DNA of 63,812 bases, the filler included, from Reticulomyxa filosa (lineage: Eukaryota; Protista; Foraminifera): the NCBI GenBank assembly GCA_000512085.1. It is 9 parts of 9 records of this genome, joined end to end, with 100 filler letters (N's around TTAATTAATTAA, not from the genome) between each part and the next. Parts side by side here need not be neighbours in the genome. Positions count along the whole stretch, not along the records: positions 31,980 to 44,299 come from ASPP01000318.1; 8 more parts are not named here. One strand, 5' to 3'. Under the pieces are notes generated by a model. That model did no database searches, was not told the DNA's origin, and was given only the letters and a program-made list of their open reading frames with translations. Shown here in pieces: positions 31,980 to 44,299 of this stretch; position 1 is the first letter of the stretch, and each line of letters opens with the position of its first letter. A program made the position numbers and the translations under genes.

Positions 31980-32086
31980 TGTGTGCGTTCATGTTTATTT
32001 TGTTTTCAATTTTTTTCTCTTTCTTGTGTTCCTCCTCCTTCTCCTCTTCCTCTTCTTCTTTCCCTTCCCCCCCCCCCCCCTTTCCC

Positions 32087-32737
32087 TCAATTGCATCCCT
32101 CCAATAAAAAACTTGTGTTTGACGAATTTGAACATTCTTTGTTTGAATGGGGCTGTAACCTTGATGCATTGCTTACATCGGTCGAATGCACAGCAAACCC
32201 AGTCAACCAATACATGACCCAACAATCCACAGTTCCAAATTTAATTGTGGCTGTTGATGTTTTTTGATCGACGACATTGTCCAAAAGCCATTTTATTTTT
32301 GGCGCACTAAAATAAGTTGACAACGGAAGTCCGCACTCTTTTCGAAATCGGTCAATTCCTAATTGATGTCCTTTCGACATCTCAGAAACAATCTTTGCTG
32401 TTCTTGTATCTTGCCAAATAATGGCATTGTGCAGTGGGGTTTTCGTTTTTTCGTCCCACAGTATCGTTGTTTCGCGTTGGTTGGTTATTCCCAAACATTT
32501 GATGTCTTGTTTTTTAAATTTGCCTGCATTCATCACTTTATCAAAACATATTTGCACTTTGTCTATTATCTCCAATGGATTTTGTTCTATCCATCCATTT
32601 TTATCTTTTTCCGGCAAAGTCAGAAGGCGTAGGGGCTCTTGATGTGACGCCACAATAGTCGATTTGTCAAAAACTATCAAGCGCACCGAAGATGTGCCAC
32701 AATCCAATGCAGCTATTAATGTAGCTGTAGTACTCAT
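32087..32737 (-). CDS. GK: Glycerol kinase (FGGY family), N-terminal part, 3'-truncated
   Basis: ALDCGTSSVRLIVFD, GWIEQNP, GITNQRETTILWD, NAIIWQDTRT, GLPLSTYFSAPKIKWLLDNV, FGTVDCW and TDVSNASR. Confidence 0.92.
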   Translation of the reverse strand: MSTTATLIAALDCGTSSVRLIVFDKSTIVASHQEPLRLLTLPEKDKNGWIEQNPLEIIDKVQICFDKVMNAGKFKKQDIKCLGITNQRETTILWDEKTKTPLHNAIIWQDTRTAKIVSEMSKGHQLGIDRFRKECGLPLSTYFSAPKIKWLLDNVVDQKTSTATIKFGTVDCWVMYWLTGFAVHSTDVSNASRLQPHSNKECSNSSNTSFLLEGCN

Positions 32738-33330
32738 GATGTCGTAATAAGTAATTCCCGCACTACAAGTGAACTTTGGAACCCCTTTATTATAACAACA
32801 CACTACTCACTTTCACGACTTGTCTTTCCTCTTTCACTTGGTGAATCTTGTTGTTTGTTTTCTCTTTTATTTAAATTATTACTCTTTTGTTTTAAATTGC
32901 TCAAAAGAGCGAAAACCTTTTGTATTACAGTTTGCGCTTCTTTCAGCAGCAGAAAACCCACATAGCCATTGACGGAATTAGTTTTTATTTTAACTATTCC
33001 GAGCCAAATTTCCAAAAGAATTATTTTACTTTCAATACGTTCATATTAAGACATTTGTCAAATGGTTTTTTTTATTTTACTTCAGATTTGCATTTACTAT
33101 GCAATTTTATTCGATATGAATACATAACATGAAAATTGTACCTTACCCTAAACAACAAAATAAAAAAGGATTCACATTTATAATTTGGAAGATAATTTCA
33201 CCGACTGCTACTTTTCAATGAAAATGCACAAATCAATTCGAAACAAGTTTATTCAACGAAATATTAACTTGCATACTTTCTCTCAGCGTGTTCAGAGCAA
33301 AACAAATGTACTTTGTAAGGTAGTGAGAGA

Positions 33331-35485
33331 TTAGTTATTGTTTAATTTGACCCAACACATTGGATTTGGAATGGCATGTGAACGGCCTTGATAGACCCAG
33401 ATGTTGTGTTCGTCTAGAACAACTTTTCCTCGCCCATCAAATTTGCCAACACAAAAAGCAGCATAAACCCCTTGATATTGCGTAATTGCAGGTAAAATAG
33501 TAAATCCATATTGGTTAGTGGGATGATATTGGTGTACATGACCACTCCACACTCCAGTCAGTACATCCGTGCCCCAATATTTACTAGGAACGATACTGGT
33601 CGCAACATCCGGATGATGCACAAATATCAAAACGCGTGCATTCGGGGACTGCGCTTTCACAAACTCGATATCACTTTCCAATGCGCTGTTTTGGCTTGGA
33701 TTTGAAGCCCCTATATCTCCGAGCATCAAACATATAATAATAAAAGACACTTATTATCATTATTATTATTATTTTTTTTTTTTAAATAAAAAACAAAAGT
33801 GCAAACCTAGATTAGAGTTTGTGACAATAACAAAGTATTGATACTTGCTGTCACTACGAGTAGGTACTTTTTTTAAATAATATCCAGTCATTTTGAAAAA
33901 GGACACAGAATCAAAAGTGTCGTTACCGAACCCTAAGCATCAACAAAAAAAAGGGATGACAGAATTGAAGTGAACGACATACATATCAATAAGTGAAAAC
34001 AAGACCAAACTGTACAATCGATTTAGACGATTGGTAACAATATTGTGATCGATCAGCTCTTGGGCCCACGCGGAGGAAACGGCCATGTTATATTCGCCAT
34101 CTCCGACGAAAATCATATTATGACGGCCGTCGTTGTTGCCCGGGGTAATAAAGATGCGATCGGCGTCAACAAGTTGCAAAGACTCGAGAATGACCTGACG
34201 GATAAGTTTGGGGACAGTGTCGAGTTGATCACTGGCAACACTTTGATTGAACAGATGCGCTTGATGATCGCCGCCATAAAAAAGCAAGGTATGTTTCAAG
34301 TCACGTTTGTCGGCCATGAGTTGGTAGGCTACCAAGGCCGATTTCCAAAAAGGCTTTGGGGCGTCTGCATATCCAGTCAATTGACACAGTGACTTGTCGT
34401 TGTCGCCATTGCGACATTCAAACATATCGTCCACACTGCCATTATCATAGCGAGATACGACATCGTCCCAATCGCCGCTTATGTTGTACCAGGGCTCCAC
34501 ATGAATATCCGACATGAATAACAAGTTCATTCCACCTTCCAAGGCTTTACATACACATTGCATACTATATACACACCAGAAAGAAAAGATACAATAAAAA
34601 ACAAAATACATACGTACACTGAAAACAAAAAAAAACAAAAAAAATTTTATTTTTTTTTTTTTAAGAAAAAACTGGAATTTAAGGGGACCACACAAGAATA
34701 ATTGCTATTGTTGTCATCATTATCATCATTGCCATTGTCATTGTCATTGGACATAACATTTCTTGCTGGCAACACGTCACCTTTTGGACTGTAAATACGC
34801 TTGGTGGAGGCCCATTCTGTCGTGGCCTCATACGGATATGCCGATCGCCCATGTACATGTAATCCGAACATGCGACTTTCCTGAGTGCATTTGCGGCAAC
34901 TCAATCGACAATGCGCGGACGATGACGACGTCTCGCAAATCTGTCGCTTCAACATACTGTCTTCCATCAAATCTGCACAGTACTGTCCTGCAAAGTCTTT
35001 CGGCACAATATCATTGCAACGAGGTCCCAAATACATTGCCAATGCAGTCTCAAACAACACTACATTGTCTGTCAATTCATCGTTCAAATTTCGTGCGGAT
35101 AGCACTGCACAATCTACAAAATTTATCTAGTTCAGATCACAACCCCCTTTTTTTTTTTTGAAGTAGGAAGGAGGGGGAAGGGAAGGTTCATTTGATGAAT
35201 ATATGGAAAAAGAGGGGACAAAATAACTGCATCTAATGAGGGAACACATGCAAATTGGTGAGGAGTAAACTGTTTATACACAGAAGCGGACTGCGGGTAG
35301 AGGTGGTCAAAATGAGATAGACGCCCCATCTTCAGCTCGGAGACTGTCACAAAACCATCTCGATTATGGTCTAGTGACGTAAACGCTTCTTTAAACTGCT
35401 CAACTATCTGAGGGCTGAGCCAATATGGTACACTTCCCAAACTTAACACAAGGAAGCTCGAAAATAACAACAATGTATGCAACAT
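33331..35485 (-). CDS. Secreted EF-hand + ShKT + calcineurin-like metallophosphoesterase (acid sphingomyelinase/endopolyphosphatase-like)
   Basis: Signal peptide MLHTLLLFSSFLVLSLG, EF-hand DHNRDGFVTVSE, six-Cys ShK-like CND...YC...IC...HCRLSCRKC, and MPP motifs SDIH, GGDH, PGNND, VHHP and SGHVH. Joining these into one gene is inferred from GT-AG introns. Confidence 0.7.
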
Positions 35486-36369
35486 TGCTGATCTCTTTGA
35501 TCCAATGGCAATATTTTTTCCAAAAAAATCCTTTTGCCGTTTTAAGCTTAACCTTGGACTACACTTTCAACTGTAGACCTAGACTTTAGCATATAAGTCT
35601 ATTGATAACGTCCATTTTATGCTGCAAGTATTTCAGAGAACGTTTTAGAGCAGCTAAATAATTCACACAAGCATTGATGTAGTTACAAAAACATATACGT
35701 GTGAAGACGCAGAAATAAATATACAACAGAATACAAAATAAAACTAAAATGGTACATTGCAGAAATAACTGTTTTTATCGACAAGAAACGACGATTTGAT
35801 TCATTTTTTTTAACAATCTTGTCACATTGTTTTTCTTTAATTAATTTTGAAATTTAGGTTGATTTTTCGTTGGGGTGACTTTGATTATTTGCAGAAAATG
35901 TTGCATTACCACAATGTAAAATACATTTTTCAAAAGCCTGAGAAAGTAGTGATTTGTTTGGAACACACAAATAATTTATTTTGAAGATAACGCATTTGCA
36001 GCAAGATGTACTGAATTATGGAAAAATCATTAATTAACTTTACTAATTTAATTAGTAATTAATTAATATTTATAAATATGATTGGTTTTAAAAAACAACA
36101 AACAAACGACAAACAACAAATGATGATAACAAGCATACCAATCCAAAATAGCAAATACTATGGACTTTACAATTCTCAAATAATACAACGATATTCCAAC
36201 TACAAATGAACAAACAAAAGTTTATACTTGACAAAAAGCAAATTCATCAATATATTATCAAACAAAAAAATAAAACGTGATAATGAATATTGAAAAATAA
36301 TTATTTTTTGACAAATTTTAACAAAAATTAAATAATACTTTAAAAGCTATCATATCAAAAAAACAATAG

Positions 36370-36450
36370 TTTTTCTGCTGAAAAAATGTTGGTCGGTTTT
36401 TTGTCAAACGATAGAGTTTTAAACTTCGCTTTTTGGTGCTTACAAAACTT
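36370..36450 (+). repeat. Dispersed non-coding repeat, copy 1
   Basis: ttttctgc...aaaaaa...ttttgtcaaacgatagagttttaaa...tttttggtgc...aaactt is similar to 62271-62352. Confidence 0.65.
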
Positions 36451-37695
36451 AAGTTAAACACAAATTAAAAAAATTGAATCAAGTCCCTTGAGAAAAACGA
36501 AATAAATAGAAATGTGTTCGACTGCACAATGTGCGCGCGAATTCATTTCTTTTTTTTTACTATTTTTCCTAATGGATTTAATTTAATTTTTTAAAATAAA
36601 CTTTGTTTTTCTAAGAAGGAATGTCGTGATGACTTAGTTTCATTGTTTTATGCAGGTCAAGTAGTTGATAAAAAAAATTTTTGATGTTTTTTAAGAAAAT
36701 CGTTACTGTTAACTTAGGATTGTTAGTCAAGACAACAAAAAATTATTTGTTTGCCAACTTATTTTGATGTAAGAATGACATTTTACTTTTTTAAACAATA
36801 TCATATTAGGAAGGAGAATGGGGAGATGATGAAAAAACATACTACAAAATTTATAATGATAATATTAAACAAATTAAGTGGAATTCACCTTGTGGTTGTG
36901 GAATTGATTTTAATCTATTCAGTTGTATTGTTTTATACAGTCCAAATTAATATTGTAAATCTTAGCAAACAATAAAAACCAGTAAAAGATTTATTTTTGA
37001 TTAACTTAATGCCTAAATCTGATTTCAATCTAGCAAAAGTAATCAGCGCTACTCTTGCAGCAATCCATAAACTAGCTCTAATTTCCACACAATGATTTTT
37101 TCTTGTTCGTCGGAGGTCGTCTTGCTGTTCCGATTCTGATTACTTCATTTTGTTCTGCGTTTGCTGTGCCAGGAATTTTTTTAGAGCTGCGTTAAAAACA
37201 ACTTCTTTTAATTTTTTAAAAAGCACGTTAAATTGGACGGCTGTGTACGTGTGCAAATAATTAAGGGATCAAACATTTTGATCTAACCAAACAGCCGCTA
37301 ATGATTTTTTTCCTAAAAAAACTTTTTTCTCTTTCCCCTTATTTCTCGGTACATTTCTACACAAAGGTTCCACAGTTAAATAGTCTTGTCACTCCTCCTG
37401 CCAATAGATGTGATTTTCTTCAATTTTTCATTTCTACTGGTAAATTCTGTTGTTTCTTGCAATTTTCTTGTTTTGCCTTTTTCTGATTCAAAGTTTCAGC
37501 AGGAGCACGCAACTATGAAAAGACAGATAAAAATAGATTAGTTTGAATATTTTGTTATTTTCCAAAAGCTAAATTCAATTTTTTTGTCTGTTAACTTTCT
37601 GACTTTGTGTAGGAACGTAGTAATGACTACAAAAAAAAGGGGTTGAACACTGAAGAAACTTTAAAGAAAAGGTAAAATTGAATTCGTGATATAAC

Positions 37696-40600
37696 ATGAT
37701 TTGGTATTTAAATTTCTTTTGGTTGGTCGTTATTTGCTTTTGGTGGACCCATTTTTGCAGTTTCTTTCAAAGACTTAACATTGTATTTTTTTTTTTGGAA
37801 CTGGTCGGGAACAAATTAAAATAAAACGACAAAGTGAGCCAAACATCGAATTTGCCTGAATCTGAAATGAATGCATTGCTGTGCTTTTATAATGCAACAC
37901 ATGGACTAAACTGGAACATTTCTTCAATTGACGGATGTTCGTTTGAAGGGATTATTTGTAATTTTGAAGATGGACAATCCACTGTTACTGGTATTATTCT
38001 GAACAATCAATCTCTGTTTGGAACAATACCTCCCTGTGTGGCAAATCTCATTAATTTGCACGAATTGGTTTTGACACGCAATTTTTTGCAAGGCACTATT
38101 CCCTCCGAAATTGGGTATGTTTTTGAAAAAAAATATCAAAAATAAAAAGAAGAGAATTTTTTAAAAAATAATAGCCAACTTTCAAGACTGACAATATTGG
38201 AATTGCATCAGAATGAGTTTTCTTTGTTTATTTGTTTCCTTTCCACTCGTAAAAAAAAGAAAAGAATTTTTTAAATAAAGTTTGACAGGAACAGTGCCAA
38301 GGGAGATTGGAAGATTGGCCAGTTTGCAAATTTTGACCATGTACTCGAAGTTGAGGCGGTGACATTTTTTTTTTGCTATGCAGAATATGTTTTATTTGCG
38401 AAAAGGAAATTAGCTGAAGTTGTTTTTGATACGGTGTTTAGCAACTTAAGTGGCACAATTCCACCAGAAATTGGAAATATAACCAATCTTCTATTTTTGG
38501 ATTTGGATGAAAATGAGTTTTGTTTCCTCCAACTGTTTGAATGACTTGAATAGCTTGTTCTATTTTTTTGTTTGTAGACTCTCTGGTACAATACCACCAG
38601 AAATTGGCAATCTAAGTAATTTGGAATTTCTTGATTTGAGCATTAATGAGTTATGTAAAAAAAAGTGTTTGAAATTTTAGAGTGTAGAAAAGGATTTTCT
38701 TTGTTTTTTAAAAAAAAGATTGGGTGGTACAATACCACCAGAGATTGGTAATTTGATCAGTTTGAAAAGTTTCTTCATAATTGTGAAGTTAGGATATGCA
38801 CATGTGTTTATATGTACATATATGAATCTTTTTTTTGCAAAGTGTTTATGTTTTTAACATTCAAAACCTTTTATCTGCTGAAAGAGGTTAATTAGGATTG
38901 TTTTTGGTTTGATGTAAGTAACATAAGTGGCACAATTCCATCAGAAATTGGAAAGCTGACCAATTTGACAATGATAATATTATCTGTTAATCAGTTGAGT
39001 GAATAAGTATTTTGTGTAGTGTTCATTCACGTGCCTTGTGATGTTTATGAAAGGATAAATGGTAGTATACCTCCAGAATTTTACAACTTAGAGAAATTGC
39101 AACTGTTTCATGCGATCTATAATGAGTTGAATTATCCTTTTTTCGGAAAGATTGACAAGTGGTGAGAAATTTTTAAAACAAAATACGTGTCTGTGTATTT
39201 GTGAGTTCTACAGACTAAGTGGCACAATTTCTTCAAAGATTGGTCGTTTGACTGAATTAGAGAACCTCGAGCTGTACACAAATCAGTTCGGTTTTACACT
39301 GCAAATAACACAGACAAGATAATTTCCAAAATAATGAGTCCTTGACGGTTATTAAAACAATCTAAAAAGGTTATCTGGTTCCATACCTAGAGAAATTGGA
39401 AATTTAACAAAATTGAAGTTGTTAGATTTAAGTATGAATAAGTTAAGTTTGACATTCAATTGTATTTTTAAATAATATAAACAAATTACGAAATAGACAT
39501 GACGCTTTTTAACAAAAAAAAAAGCTTAAGTGGCACCATTCCATCAGAAATTGGAAATTTGATCCGACTCAATACTTTGTGTTTGAATCAAAATTGGTAA
39601 GCTTTTTTTTTCTCCCAATTCTTTGGATAATTTTGAATATTTTGCTCTTTTTGTTTGTAGGCTCTCTGGTAAAATACCAAACGAGCTGGGGAATCTATTT
39701 GAATTAAAACATTTATATCTCAATCAAAATGAGTTGACTGGTACAATACCAGTGGAAATTGGAAATTTCTGGAATTTGTCTGCTTTGGAATTGTCTCGAA
39801 ATCGATTAAGTGGGACCATACCATTGGAAATCGAAAATTTTTATGGCTTGTGGTTATTGAGTTTGGGGCAAAATGAATTGAATGGGACAATACCAAAAGG
39901 AATTGAAAACCTGTACTATTTGCAATATTTGATTTTGGGTTACAATAAGTTTAAAAAAAAAACAATTTGATTGACTTGTTTTAACAAATTTTTGTGTAAA
40001 AAAAGATTGAGTGGTGAGTTGCCACGATTGGATATGCTGCCATATTTGTTAAATATCCAAGTGAACAATAATATGCTGAGTGGAACTATTCCATTTGATG
40101 ATTCTTATGATTGGGATTACTTGTTAATGCTTTCTTTAGAAAAGAATATGTTCAGTGGAAGCTTACCGAAATTACCTAATTACATGAATTTTACATTGAC
40201 CTTGACACTGCATATGAATCAATTTTCAGATTACAATTTGCACGATTGGTATATGTATTCCTCAAAAGAAAAAAAAAAATTTGTATTTGTGTTCAAATTA
40301 GATATTTTTACATTCAAATCAAATACAACAATCTAAGGCTGGATGAGTTATTTCAGAAAGCTCCAGTATTGCAGATATTATCCATTTATGATAATCCACA
40401 TTTGAGGGGACATCTTCCAAAAAGTTTGTTTGACACCAATGTAAAAATATTTCTTGCACATGGATGTGAAATTGATGGAGTATTGCCATGGAGTGATGTT
40501 CAAGGAAACATTCAATTTGCCACGTTATTGCAAAATCGTTTGTCTGGTGCAATGCCGAGTAGTTTAATTCAAGCAACCACCGTCGAAAATATGAGCAATA

Positions 40601-42675
40601 TTTTAATTATATACAATGATGCAAGTTATTTATATATGATTACATATTATTTCACAAAAACAAAGCATTGAATGTCGAATTGAAACAGTACTGCAGTTGT
40701 CGCTTAATGTGAGCACCGAATTGGAGAATGGATTATACTTGCTAGGAAATCGATTTTCTGAAAGTAGGGAATGGTATCAAGTATTTGAAAATCGAGAATT
40801 ACCAGAGTATGTTCCAAAGGACGAAAGAGACGCAAAAAACTTGTACATTACAAAAGAAAGCGACTTTGCTGAATTGGTGTTAGTTGGATTTATTATGATA
40901 ACTATTTTGCTTTTGTTTCTGCGAAAATCAAGAAGATATTCAATTGTTAAGAGATTGTGTGGTAACAAGATAATATATTGTTTCAAAATTCGAAGGCTTC
41001 CAGACCATGTCGGATTTCAGCAAATGAAAGTGTTATTGAAATGGTTCAATAATTGGTTTGCAGCAGTTATCATCAGTTCATTGGTGATAATCTATGCAAT
41101 GAATAGCACATATTATGAGAAAGGATATTTGTTGTCCCATTTTTCATTGGCATACATTGAAGATTTGTCATTGATGGCTACAATTCTATTGATGCTCATT
41201 GTTATACTTTCCAATACTGTTGTTTTAATATATGCATTCCAATGGATTATAAATCCTCCATTCGCTACAGCAAGTACTTCCGAAGATACTTTTGATGATG
41301 CAATAGATTCATTTACTTGGCAAAAAGGAATAAAATTGGCATTGTTATTTCTGGGATGGATTTTAATTGTTACCATTGTGGTGTTATATTTTGCATTTGA
41401 ATCATTTCCAGATAATAACACATTACACGTATCTTCGAAATTGGTGTATACAGTCCAAGGTGTAATGTCATTGGCATTATCTTTGCATAATTCTTTGATA
41501 GCACCAAATCTTGCAATGTATGTGGTTGAACTTATATTTTATGTTGTCGGCATTCACAAACGCAGACTAGCCCAAAAATGGTCCAGTTATACCGCATTAT
41601 TCTTGCAGACATTGATATGTATTGTAATTCCACTTTTCCTTGCCTCATTTTTTTACAACAATTGTGGTCGACAATGGGTTAATTATTGGGAGACTTGCTC
41701 CGGAAAAGACTCAAATGAAGTTATTACCAGCTATCAATGGACTTATTATGATGTTGATTTGTTGTGGTATATGAATGAAAATGTGGTTGTATTGAATTGG
41801 GACGATTTGTGCAAATATCAAGGCTTTAAATTTGGTATTTAATCAAATATTTCACAAACAATAACATAACATAAGTGACAAACCAAAGATTTTTTTTTGT
41901 AATAAAATTTATATTCCCAGGTGCATGTGTTCGTGAAATTCTGGAAAAATGGGGATATGTGATGGTAACTAAAATGGCAATTAATATATTTCTGCCGTGG
42001 ATTCGTTTAGCCAATATTCGTGCATTTTTATTTCAATGTGAATCATTGAAATTCTTGGCCGGATCAAATGAATTGAGTTTTGAAACTGTTGGACTATTTG
42101 TGAATGTAGAACTGGTGGTTTTGTTGGGATTATTTTGTCCATTGGTTATACCACTGTGTGCTATGGCAACTGTATCCAATATCTTGAATTTCCAGTACTT
42201 GTTGAACAAAAAAATCAAACGTGTGACGTCATTGGAAGAAAATCTCATTGAAAAAAGTAACATTTACAAGCTCTCTGATGAGATTCCTGCATTCCCAATA
42301 TCGGTGTTGACTGTGCCGTTTTTATTGCAACAGTCAATTTGGATATTTTCTGGTGCATTGAGTAACGATTATTCTTATTTGACAAAGAATGTGTTTGCTT
42401 ATGCATTTTCTATTATCGATATTTGTTTCATAGTAGCTGCTATTATTGTACGACGTTTTCATGGAATTCAACTACTACAACAACAAAGTTAATCTTTTCC
42501 GTTGACAAAAATAAAAGAAACTAATAAAATATTCCTGTGTTTTTAATACAAATACTCAACAAAAGAAAAATTTGAAAGTGAATCCATAACAAGCACCACT
42601 GAAGAAAATTTGATATTACATGATGAACCAGAATACTATCGAATGCAGCCAATGGAAACACTAAAAGAGGAATGA
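37696..42675 (+). CDS. LRR ectodomain (24-aa plant-type repeats) + multi-pass transmembrane protein
   Basis: Signal peptide, an LRR N-cap (ALLCFYNAT.GLNW...GCSFEGIIC), about 20 LxxLxLxxNxLSGxIPxEIG repeats mostly on single-repeat exons, then ~10-11 hydrophobic helices (ORFs 40697..41842 and 41875..42492). Short last exon ending ...ETLKEE* at 42675. Confidence 0.85.
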
Positions 42676-43184
42676 ATACTTTTTATTAATGTAATCAAGG
42701 GTTAATACAGTTTTTTAAAGGATTAATTTTGTTGATTTTTTTTGTTATATTGATTATTGGTTCAGTTATTATCTTAAATTTAAAAATGTCCTAAAATGGC
42801 TGAAATTGGAGAGATAACAAAGTTCTTGATGTACAATAAAAATTTTATTTGTTTTTTTTAGTTGTGATTTTGATTATAATCTTTTGTTCAATAAACTTTC
42901 TAAATAAAAATAAATTTGAGAAACTAATTAATTGTTTGAATATTGAACGGAAACTTCAACTGTTTTTAGTTAAAAAATACGTGTTATACGCATCTTAGTT
43001 TTTGATTAGTTATTTGAAAAGATGAAAACCTTTGTAGAATCAGGATTATGCAAAAATACAGAAAAGAGAAACATCCCGACATTTGGCTGTGTTGTGTGGA
43101 GTTAAACAAAAAACAATACTTGTTTCCAGTTTATCAAAAAAAACAAATAATTACAAAAATAATAATAAGCTGAAGATTAGGATA

Positions 43185-43510
43185 ACAAAAATGTTGGGAA
43201 ATTGGGCACGATTATATTCAATTGACAGAGGATGGATTGATGAAATTATTGCTCAACATGCAATTTTGATTGTATTCGAATATGGGATATATTCTCTGGA
43301 AAAGAATTTAACACGATAAAGAGACATTCGGAGTATATTTATCGTGCAGATTTTTTCCAGATGGTGATATGGTAGTATCCTGTTCTATGGATAAGACGAT
43401 TCGAATATGGAATGTAATTTCAGGATAAGAAATTCGAAGATTAACAGGTACACCGATAGAGTTCCAATGCTATATTTTCCAGAGATGGACAGCGTTTTAC
43501 AATGGGAAAT
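43185..43510 (+). pseudogene. Degenerate WD40 gene fragment
   Basis: Remnants NWARLYSIDRGWIDEII, IRIWDI and [23 protein letters not shown], broken by stops and frameshifts. Confidence 0.7.
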
Positions 43511-44299
43511 AAGCTCTAGATTGCAAATAAAAAATTTTCCTGACTGCGATTGTGTGAATGATTTGTGAAAAAAAGTAGCTGCTCTGCTTTTGATCAATTT
43601 TTTTGTTTTTTCATATTCATTTGACTGACTGGAGCTCGCTTTTGTTATATTTTGGCCAATTTATGAATTTACAATTTTTTATCATCAGTTCTTATTGGAG
43701 AAATAAAATATCTTATAAATGGATCTGATTCAAAGCCGAAGGAAGGCATACGATAAAATTACTGTCAGAACAAAAATTGAACTCTTTTAATCAATACTTG
43801 AAATTTTGAATAAGTTTCCGATTGCTTTGATATTCTGAAAACAAAGCTGCCACCTATTGAAGTGATTATGTTAAAAGTTCTCTTTTTAGTTTTTCCTTTG
43901 TTTGATTTGAGGTTTTTTGTATCCATTTTTACTGTGTTACATTAATACACTGCAGCAATTGATAACATAAATTTCATTTAGCAGTAATAATTCTTTAATA
44001 TCGTATTGCGTGAGTTCTATCAAAGTGTTTTGAACAGTTAATTGATAATTATTAAATGATAGTACAAATCAACAACACTTAAAATTCCAAAGTAATATTA
44101 TGATATAATAATTGGAAAGCAATTGATTGTTATGATCTTTTATTAACATACAAAAAAAAAATCCCTTAAAATGAACTGACGCAAAAATTTACAATCTGAT
44201 TTATAAAAAAAAACTTTTCAAACTTTTGCTTAAATGAAATATATATATCGTGGTAATTCCAAAAATGTATTTTGTTTTTAATAAAAGTGTACACAATTC

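Follow-up and report, generated by a model that had tools for sequence, protein, structure and literature searches.

The stretch of DNA that was analysed (the window) holds 63,812 nucleotides (nt) of Reticulomyxa filosa sequence joined from nine parts, and the locus considered here lies on one of them, a 12,320-nt contig of assembly GCA_000512085.1 (ASPP01000318.1; positions 31,980 to 44,299). From splice signals and reading frame we rebuilt a gene of 18 exons on the plus strand (37696-42675), with introns of 57-131 nt and a product of about 1,224 amino acids (aa), in which a signal peptide, an LRRNT_2 cap and some 21-23 plant-type leucine-rich repeats (LRRs) of 24 residues are followed by an 11-helix membrane domain (Table 1). 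The gene is probably a member of a family, found in foraminifera, whose proteins carry a secreted LRR solenoid of plant type fused directly to a membrane domain of the OSCA/TMEM63 fold, and its exon grid is shared by the paralogs and kept in a fixed order. The joined spliced product was used for description and local comparison, and the database searches were carried out with single exons or with paralog proteins.

The public model of the locus, RFI_00303 (P0006, 932 aa; 39442-42675), is the gene's own product from the exon at 39525 onward. It starts in the intron before 39525, omits the eleven upstream exons and runs partway into the two introns that follow 40248 and 41834; the gene models of the paralogs were likewise fragmented. 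The junctions 40248/40338 and 40624/40689 concurred with the paralog at locus L004 (protein P0009), where the same stretch is one continuous open reading frame (ORF), and the junction 41834/41921 concurred with P0004, P0005, P0007 and P0010. Six donor/acceptor combinations kept the frame open at the exon end at 40624, and this donor, with the next exon starting at 40689, was chosen on account of its use in P0006 and its agreement with the contiguous sequence in P0009, P0008 and P0011. Thirteen of the 17 donors (37760-42488) begin with GTT instead of GTA or GTG. As a separate observation, the intron start at the LRR junctions (G-TTR-AGT) resembles the x-Leu-Ser codons with which the following repeat begins, as though it lay inside a duplicated repeat start.

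An earlier note on this DNA had listed ten LRR exons, from exon A to the four-LRR exon of Table 1, as symmetric units bounded by phase-2 introns near the conserved Asn of the repeat. All ten were exact, being preceded by AG and followed by GT, of the lengths given in that note and in phase 2 at both ends. At the 72-nt exons the intron lies in the codon after the Asn, and in the 69/75 pairs it is displaced by 3 nt (one codon) upstream and interrupts the Asn codon, both repeats of a pair remaining 24 residues long. When joined, the exons made one open frame of in-register 24-residue plant-type LRRs; unspliced, each of them fell within a short ORF ending in the neighbouring intron. One further symmetric exon, of 42 nt, precedes the first exon of the earlier note. 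Nine exons of 69-75 nt, all in phase 2-2, carry a single repeat each, and the remaining array is contained in exons of 288, 243 and 287 nt. As the same note had described for the repeats of this gene, the scaffold residues are kept while the xxLxLxx positions change from repeat to repeat, and comparison between paralogs gave the same result.

Table 1. Exons of the rebuilt LRR gene of R. filosa, with positions counted along the window
Exon	Position	Strand	Support or comparison
Exon 1, probable: start codon and hydrophobic signal peptide (~21 aa)	37696..37759	+	In-frame join to 37835; donor inferred
Exon 2: LRRNT_2 cap and first LRRs, ending in phase 2	37835..38114	+	Pfam LRRNT_2; GT donor at 38115
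42-nt exon, phase 2-2: beta-strand half of an LRR	38175..38216	+	Bounded by AG/GT, frame kept
A, single LRR, 69 nt, intron moved 3 nt into the Asn codon	38281..38349	+	
B, single LRR, 75 nt	38442..38516	+	With its downstream intron, homologous to exon QNW and its intron
C, single LRR, 72 nt	38578..38649	+	Counterpart in L007 and L002 is a 144-nt two-repeat exon
D, single LRR, 69 nt	38719..38787	+	72 nt in four other measurable paralogs
E, single LRR, 75 nt	38919..38993	+	Common to L004 and L001; absent from L007 and L002
F, single LRR, 72 nt	39054..39125	+	
Y, single LRR, 72 nt	39214..39285	+	In 8 of 9 loci, absent from L001
K, single LRR, 72 nt	39370..39441	+	Next intron 83 nt
QNW, single LRR, 72 nt	39525..39596	+	RFI_00303 begins just upstream, in the intron
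Four-LRR exon, 288 nt	39661..39948	+	Kept in all nine loci, with 285 nt in L007 and 216 nt in L008
243-nt exon, irregular C-terminal LRRs	40006..40248	+	Next junction matches the continuous coding sequence of L004/P0009
287-nt exon, last irregular LRRs and juxtamembrane region	40338..40624	+	Donor as in P0006
1,146-nt exon, TM0-TM5 and conserved Cys-rich extracellular loop	40689..41834	+	Hydrophobic segments, homologs, AlphaFold2 fold matches
567-nt exon, TM6-TM10	41921..42487	+	Junction as in P0004, P0005, P0007 and P0010; fold matches
Last exon, acidic C-terminal tail and stop	42566..42675	+	Matches C-termini of P0005 and P0006; model disordered (pLDDT <50)

Eight paralogous loci of R. filosa were scanned with a position matrix built from the gene's own repeats, and all eight carried the same AG/GT grid at homologous positions, the introns themselves having diverged. 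Their layout was a run of 72-nt single-repeat exons followed by the conserved 288-nt four-repeat exon, and the sharing of the grid was far beyond chance, which supports the splice sites proposed for the gene. Paralogs that do not have particular introns read straight through the predicted junctions, by exon fusion in L005 and by a continuous ORF in L004 (11263-12940), where the 243-, 287- and 1,146-nt exons form one ORF of 559 codons and two introns are absent. A distant member, P0050 (1,165 aa), on a Tara Oceans metagenome scaffold (L010, 1030-4527) has the LRRs and the membrane domain in a single uninterrupted ORF. The two fused exons of L005 and the uninterrupted ORF of L010 serve, much as a cDNA would, as natural checks on the predicted junctions, and the latter also indicates that the one-repeat-per-exon layout is not universal in the family. 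Tandem Repeats Finder detected no array at the DNA level in the repeats; the repeats are old. Genes with 72-nt phase-2 LRR exons are a known kind (PMC11378527), of which this layout is a further instance, without a signature of shuffling.

The array is an LRR ectodomain, as the earlier note had called it, with a conserved signal-peptide exon, an LRRNT_2 cap and many N-glycosylation sequons. The predicted signal-peptide exon encodes a hydrophobic leader, and an M-x-W-x-L exon was found at the same upstream distance in L004 and L007, making three loci in all. LRRNT_2 was matched with an E-value of 3.2e-5 (24.5 bits against a Pfam cut-off of 20.7); LRR_1 and LRR_8 were also above their cut-offs and LRR_14 was below (35.4 bits, cut-off 40). 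Sixteen sequons lie in the N-terminal part. The repeats fit the plant-type (PS) consensus LxxLxLxxNxLSGxIPxxIG, of 24 residues, and their closest solved relatives in the PDB were the ectodomains of plant LRR receptor-like kinases (LRR-RLKs), such as GSO1, FLS2 and PEPR1.

Such similarity might suggest a plant-like LRR receptor kinase, since an LRR exon matched plant LRR-RLK ectodomains very strongly and P0007 and P0008 are named CLAVATA1-like receptor kinase in GenBank. We regard this identity as extremely improbable and those two names as misnomers: no kinase domain was found with Pfam in any exon of the gene or in the scanned family members, paralogs included, and the C-terminal 570 residues form a polytopic membrane domain. 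For this locus the receptor-kinase identity was rejected, there being no kinase exon before the stop codon at 42675.

After the LRRs there are about 570 residues with many hydrophobic helices, 11 of which were predicted in the C-terminal part, and Pfam assigned the membrane exons to no family; the earlier note had not recognised this polytopic end of the proposed receptor. The 381-residue ORF downstream of the exons listed by the earlier note had R. filosa proteins as its only matches (73-76% identity). With P0004 as query, an exhaustive phmmer search gave 134 relatives; every one that bore an organism name was foraminiferal (Reticulomyxa, and Bolivina argentea and Nonionella stella from EukProt), and the rest came from environmental contigs. 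N-terminal LRR matches were found in all nine of the longer relatives that were scanned, weakly in two of them. The family alignment contained Pro, Cys and Trp columns that were invariant across foraminifera.

An AlphaFold2 model of the paralog P0004, which is 73% identical, was built from an alignment of 43 sequences and had a predicted local distance difference test score (pLDDT) of 82.8 and a predicted template modelling score (pTM) of 0.83. The top 50 matches of a Foldseek search with this model against the PDB were all TMEM63, OSCA or TMEM16 proteins. With VIA-align, it was superimposed on TMEM63A/B/C and OSCA1/3 at Z 20-21, with a root-mean-square deviation of 5.2-5.8 A over 374-405 residues, starting from the first transmembrane helix (TM0) at about model residue 18, and on TMEM16 and TMC proteins at Z 15-17.6, with the alignment beginning at the following helix. 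In the ESM Atlas the CSC1/RSN1_7TM cluster was matched best (TM-score 0.54), and the fold-match values were well over the caution level of the tool for helical bundles. The model of P0004 had the 11-TM fold with TM0 and with the N-terminus outside. If the N-terminus faces outward, as it does in OSCA, the conserved Cys-rich beta-hairpin that joins TM5 to TM6 would be extracellular too, in keeping with its invariant cysteines. We also noted, in the TM7-TM8 region of the family consensus (about residues 390-440 of P0004), a motif in which two Pro-Leu pairs come after three acidic positions that are conserved.

Several points weigh against reading the gene as an LRR solenoid joined to an OSCA/TMEM63-like domain. 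The Pfam families RSN1_TM, PHM7_cyt and RSN1_7TM had no match to the exons of the gene; RSN1_TM was touched by two of 43 family members, both of them distant, with an E-value of 0.005 that was below the Pfam threshold, and the family profile found nothing real among the PDB sequences, only designed helical proteins at E >0.07. The cytosolic domain that OSCA has between TM2 and TM3 was absent from the model, in which some 20 residues of loop connect these two helices. The structure used for the fold match was predicted for the paralog P0004 and not for the gene's own protein, and a shared fold would be no demonstration of channel activity. As to the gene model, the splice sites rest on comparison with paralogs, the signal-peptide donor and the donor at 40624 are picks among alternatives, and most of the paralog contigs are cut at their 5' end, so that exon counts are complete for three loci only.

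The membrane domain could also be a multi-pass anchor or a lipid scramblase that has no role as a channel, the LRRs serving for adhesion or matrix binding and not for signalling. The TMEM16-OSCA-TMC superfamily holds scramblases as well as channels (PMC11534332), and the matches to TMEM16F, nhTMEM16 and TMC at Z 15-17.6 as well as the want of any sequence match to OSCA pore motifs would agree with this. We consider it rather unlikely, though a serious alternative. The closest structural matches were to OSCA/TMEM63 channels, and a mere anchor would not readily account for the purifying selection on the membrane exon in five of six pairs or for the invariant Pro, Cys and Trp columns.

Selection was estimated as the ratio of non-synonymous to synonymous substitution rates (dN/dS) with the Nei-Gojobori counting method on short, repeat-derived alignments from four phylogenetically independent paralog pairs, using all shared repeat classes. 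The five x positions of the concave face gave a dN/dS of 0.87 (bootstrap 0.55-1.38), the Leu/Gly/Pro/Ile scaffold 0.26 (0.18-0.37) and the remaining positions 0.44 (0.30-0.68); with all pairs pooled, the values were 0.98, 0.14 and 0.56, respectively. The membrane exon gave 0.17-0.31 in the five pairs mentioned above and 0.65 in the L004-L005 pair. Purifying selection on the exposed LRR residues, which the earlier note had held would speak against a variable recognition repertoire, was thus not what these estimates indicated. The exposed concave face appears to be near-neutral, either free to vary or diversifying, the estimate not being above 1, and the constraint on the rest of the protein suggests that the gene is most likely functional.

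To compare exon order, 97 repeats from nine loci were assigned to positional classes, and 95 of them were labelled. For 86 of these 95 the nearest cross-locus relative belonged to the same positional class, and the mean best identity was 0.79 at the same position between genes against 0.66 within a gene, which is the pattern of collinear descent by whole-gene duplication. Swapped or mosaic exons between paralogs, which would be expected if the exons were shuffled as the earlier note had proposed, were not found in the nine loci, and neither were relics of LRRs in introns or in reverse orientation in a scan of both strands of the contig piece with a position-specific scoring matrix at a low threshold. 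Classes C0, C, E, F, G, Y, GPN and B3 were present in some loci and absent in others; the gene itself is without the GPN exon that six paralogs carry, and the 83-nt intron after exon K leaves no room for it.

Changes in the repeats were of three sorts: whole exons, the deletion of one repeat inside a multi-repeat exon (unit C0, missing here, and B3, missing in L008) and exon fusion through intron loss (L005 and L004). Given that repeats also change inside multi-repeat exons, the symmetry of the exons is compatible with repeat gain and loss yet not required for it. The idea that the symmetric exons are used, through exon skipping in transcripts or ongoing shuffling between paralogs, for a variable recognition repertoire of the ROCO or DSCAM type seems quite improbable for this family. 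All the LRR exons are in phase 2-2, so that any skip or duplication would keep the frame, and paralogs do differ by whole exons, but repeat insertions and deletions occur inside exons too and no LRR relics were detected. The exposed residues were not under purifying selection, but their dN/dS was not above 1 either. Alternative splicing has been seen with the same 72-nt phase-2 exons in brown algae (PMC11378527). The ROCO genes there have almost no conservation of exon order (PMC3341825), whereas here the order was kept in 86 of 95 repeats. Of the modularity proposed in the earlier note, the in-frame part stood, in that paralogs differ by whole in-frame exons, and the shuffled repertoire did not, the order being collinear and relics absent. 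Taken together, comparison of the loci at the sequence level supports evolutionary modularity of the exons and does not support a repertoire generated by splicing or shuffling.

The 69-75-72 pattern that occurs twice in the gene had been read as a duplication of a three-exon block (A-B-C to D-E-F), and this was not borne out, the two occurrences having different histories. The A69/B75 pair is common to L007 and corresponds to 72/72 in L004; the 75-nt form of E is common to L004 and L001, and D is 69 nt only here, the four other paralogs with a measurable length having 72 nt. Units C and F showed no special affinity, A and D were reciprocal nearest classes, and introns I3 and I6 shared a weak 42-nt match (E 0.025), with a global intron score of z <3.5. 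A recent A-B-C/D-E-F duplication was rejected on the intron score, the lack of affinity between C and F and the gene-specific length of D; an ancient A-B/D-E duplication may have occurred.

In contrast to the three-exon block, another block duplication that carried its intron, relating exon B and exon QNW, is well supported by alignment. Exon B is homologous to exon QNW, and the homology continues through the intron that follows each of them into the first part of the exon beyond, which on the QNW side is the 288-nt exon; alignment of intron B|C with intron QNW|B1 gave z 7.3 within the gene and 13.6 against L007. Exon B is also 88% identical over 66 nt to the QNW exon of L004. Exon exchange was discarded as the source of this identity, because the flanking intron is homologous too and an old block duplication fits better. 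The introns flanking the 42-nt exon (38115-38174 and 38217-38280) contain A/T-rich stretches of 30 nt that are 90% identical to each other (blastn E 1.6e-7), which hints at a local duplication around the mini-exon.

As regards neighbouring genes, the contig also carries, upstream of the gene and on the minus strand, an N-terminal exon of an FGGY-family carbohydrate kinase (32090-32803; Pfam, E 4.9e-47) and a small EF-hand ORF (35135-35485) with sub-threshold matches, and the ORFs at 33334-34695 had no Pfam match. In L002 (4370-5039) and L005 (4326-5698) a WD40 gene lies just downstream of the LRR-channel gene. In the window a WD40-looking stretch was seen by eye at about 43350-43420, and the one ORF scanned there (43083-43316) had no Pfam match. 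The WD40 neighbour may reflect a segmental duplication that included the adjoining gene.

We propose that the periodic introns would be the legacy of an array built from duplicated exon-plus-intron units, one block duplication of which is still visible. Comparison of the loci shows that the family has diversified by gene duplication, by near-neutral or diversifying change of the concave face and, now and then, by gaining or losing whole repeats, the exon order remaining fixed. The LRR ectodomain may bind a molecule outside the cell, for example one of a surface, the matrix, prey or a microbe, or may serve as a tether, and would thereby modulate either the opening of an OSCA/TMEM63-like pore, with cation flux, or a scramblase groove, with lipid scrambling, so that recognition and ion signalling would reside in one polypeptide. 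It is possible, and we put it forward only tentatively, that these proteins form a lineage-specific, expanded foraminiferal family of sensors in which an OSCA/TMEM63-like channel or scramblase is gated directly, or tethered, by a plant-type LRR ectodomain that serves for recognition, with no kinase. If this were so, the exon-modular LRR array would let paralogs alter their number of repeats in frame. If the membrane domain conducts, the protein would represent a receptor-channel design not known from plants or animals, and a candidate for the sensing of contact, prey or osmotic stress by naked reticulopodial cells.

At least three genera of foraminifera have conserved the combination of LRRs with an OSCA/TMEM63 fold. 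Annotation from sequence does not reveal it, and the proteins are filed as hypothetical or CLAVATA1-like. In the literature that was searched, we found no LRR fused to OSCA, TMEM63 or anoctamin-superfamily proteins and no foraminiferal LRR receptors. This architecture, found so far only in foraminifera, is apparently undescribed and is more novel than the exon layout.

One LRR per exon with phase-2 introns is known in brown algae and in vertebrate hormone receptors, and a rhizarian would be the third independent lineage to show it, here as a contrast case of a modular layout without shuffling. With the brown-algal ROCO genes the gene shares the single LRR per 72-nt exon, the symmetric phase-2 introns, the expanded paralogs and the fast-evolving concave face (PMC3341825, PMC11378527). 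In Ectocarpus, even recent duplicates have kept little of their exon order (PMC3341825), whereas here it is conserved, there are no pseudo-exons in the introns and, of about 22 repeats, only 9 have an exon to themselves; furthermore, an extracellular plant-type LRR array is joined here to an OSCA-like membrane domain, in place of the ROC-COR of those proteins. The vertebrate receptors FSHR, LHR and TSHR, as cited in PMC11378527, have one LRR per exon and all introns in phase 2. Like the present gene they join an LRR ectodomain to a polytopic membrane domain, for which large exons at the end of the gene code; they differ in having a seven-helix G protein-coupled receptor, another LRR class and a small, stable gene family.

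The plant receptors FLS2, GSO1, PEPR1 and BRI1 share the 24-residue plant-type consensus, the LRRNT_2 cap and strong similarity of the repeats, whereas the present gene does not have the single-pass helix followed by a kinase. In LRRC8/VRAC, an LRR domain and a channel-forming membrane domain are likewise found in one polypeptide; there the LRRs are C-terminal and cytosolic and the membrane domain is pannexin-like, so that it is unrelated to the foraminiferal protein in fold and topology. Finally, the OSCA, TMEM63 and CSC1 proteins share with the predicted model the 11-helix fold including TM0 and the extracellular N-terminus. In contrast to them, the foraminiferal protein has no homology detectable at the sequence level and no cytosolic TM2-TM3 domain, and it bears instead an N-terminal LRR ectodomain of about 640 residues and an extra Cys-rich beta-hairpin loop between TM5 and TM6.

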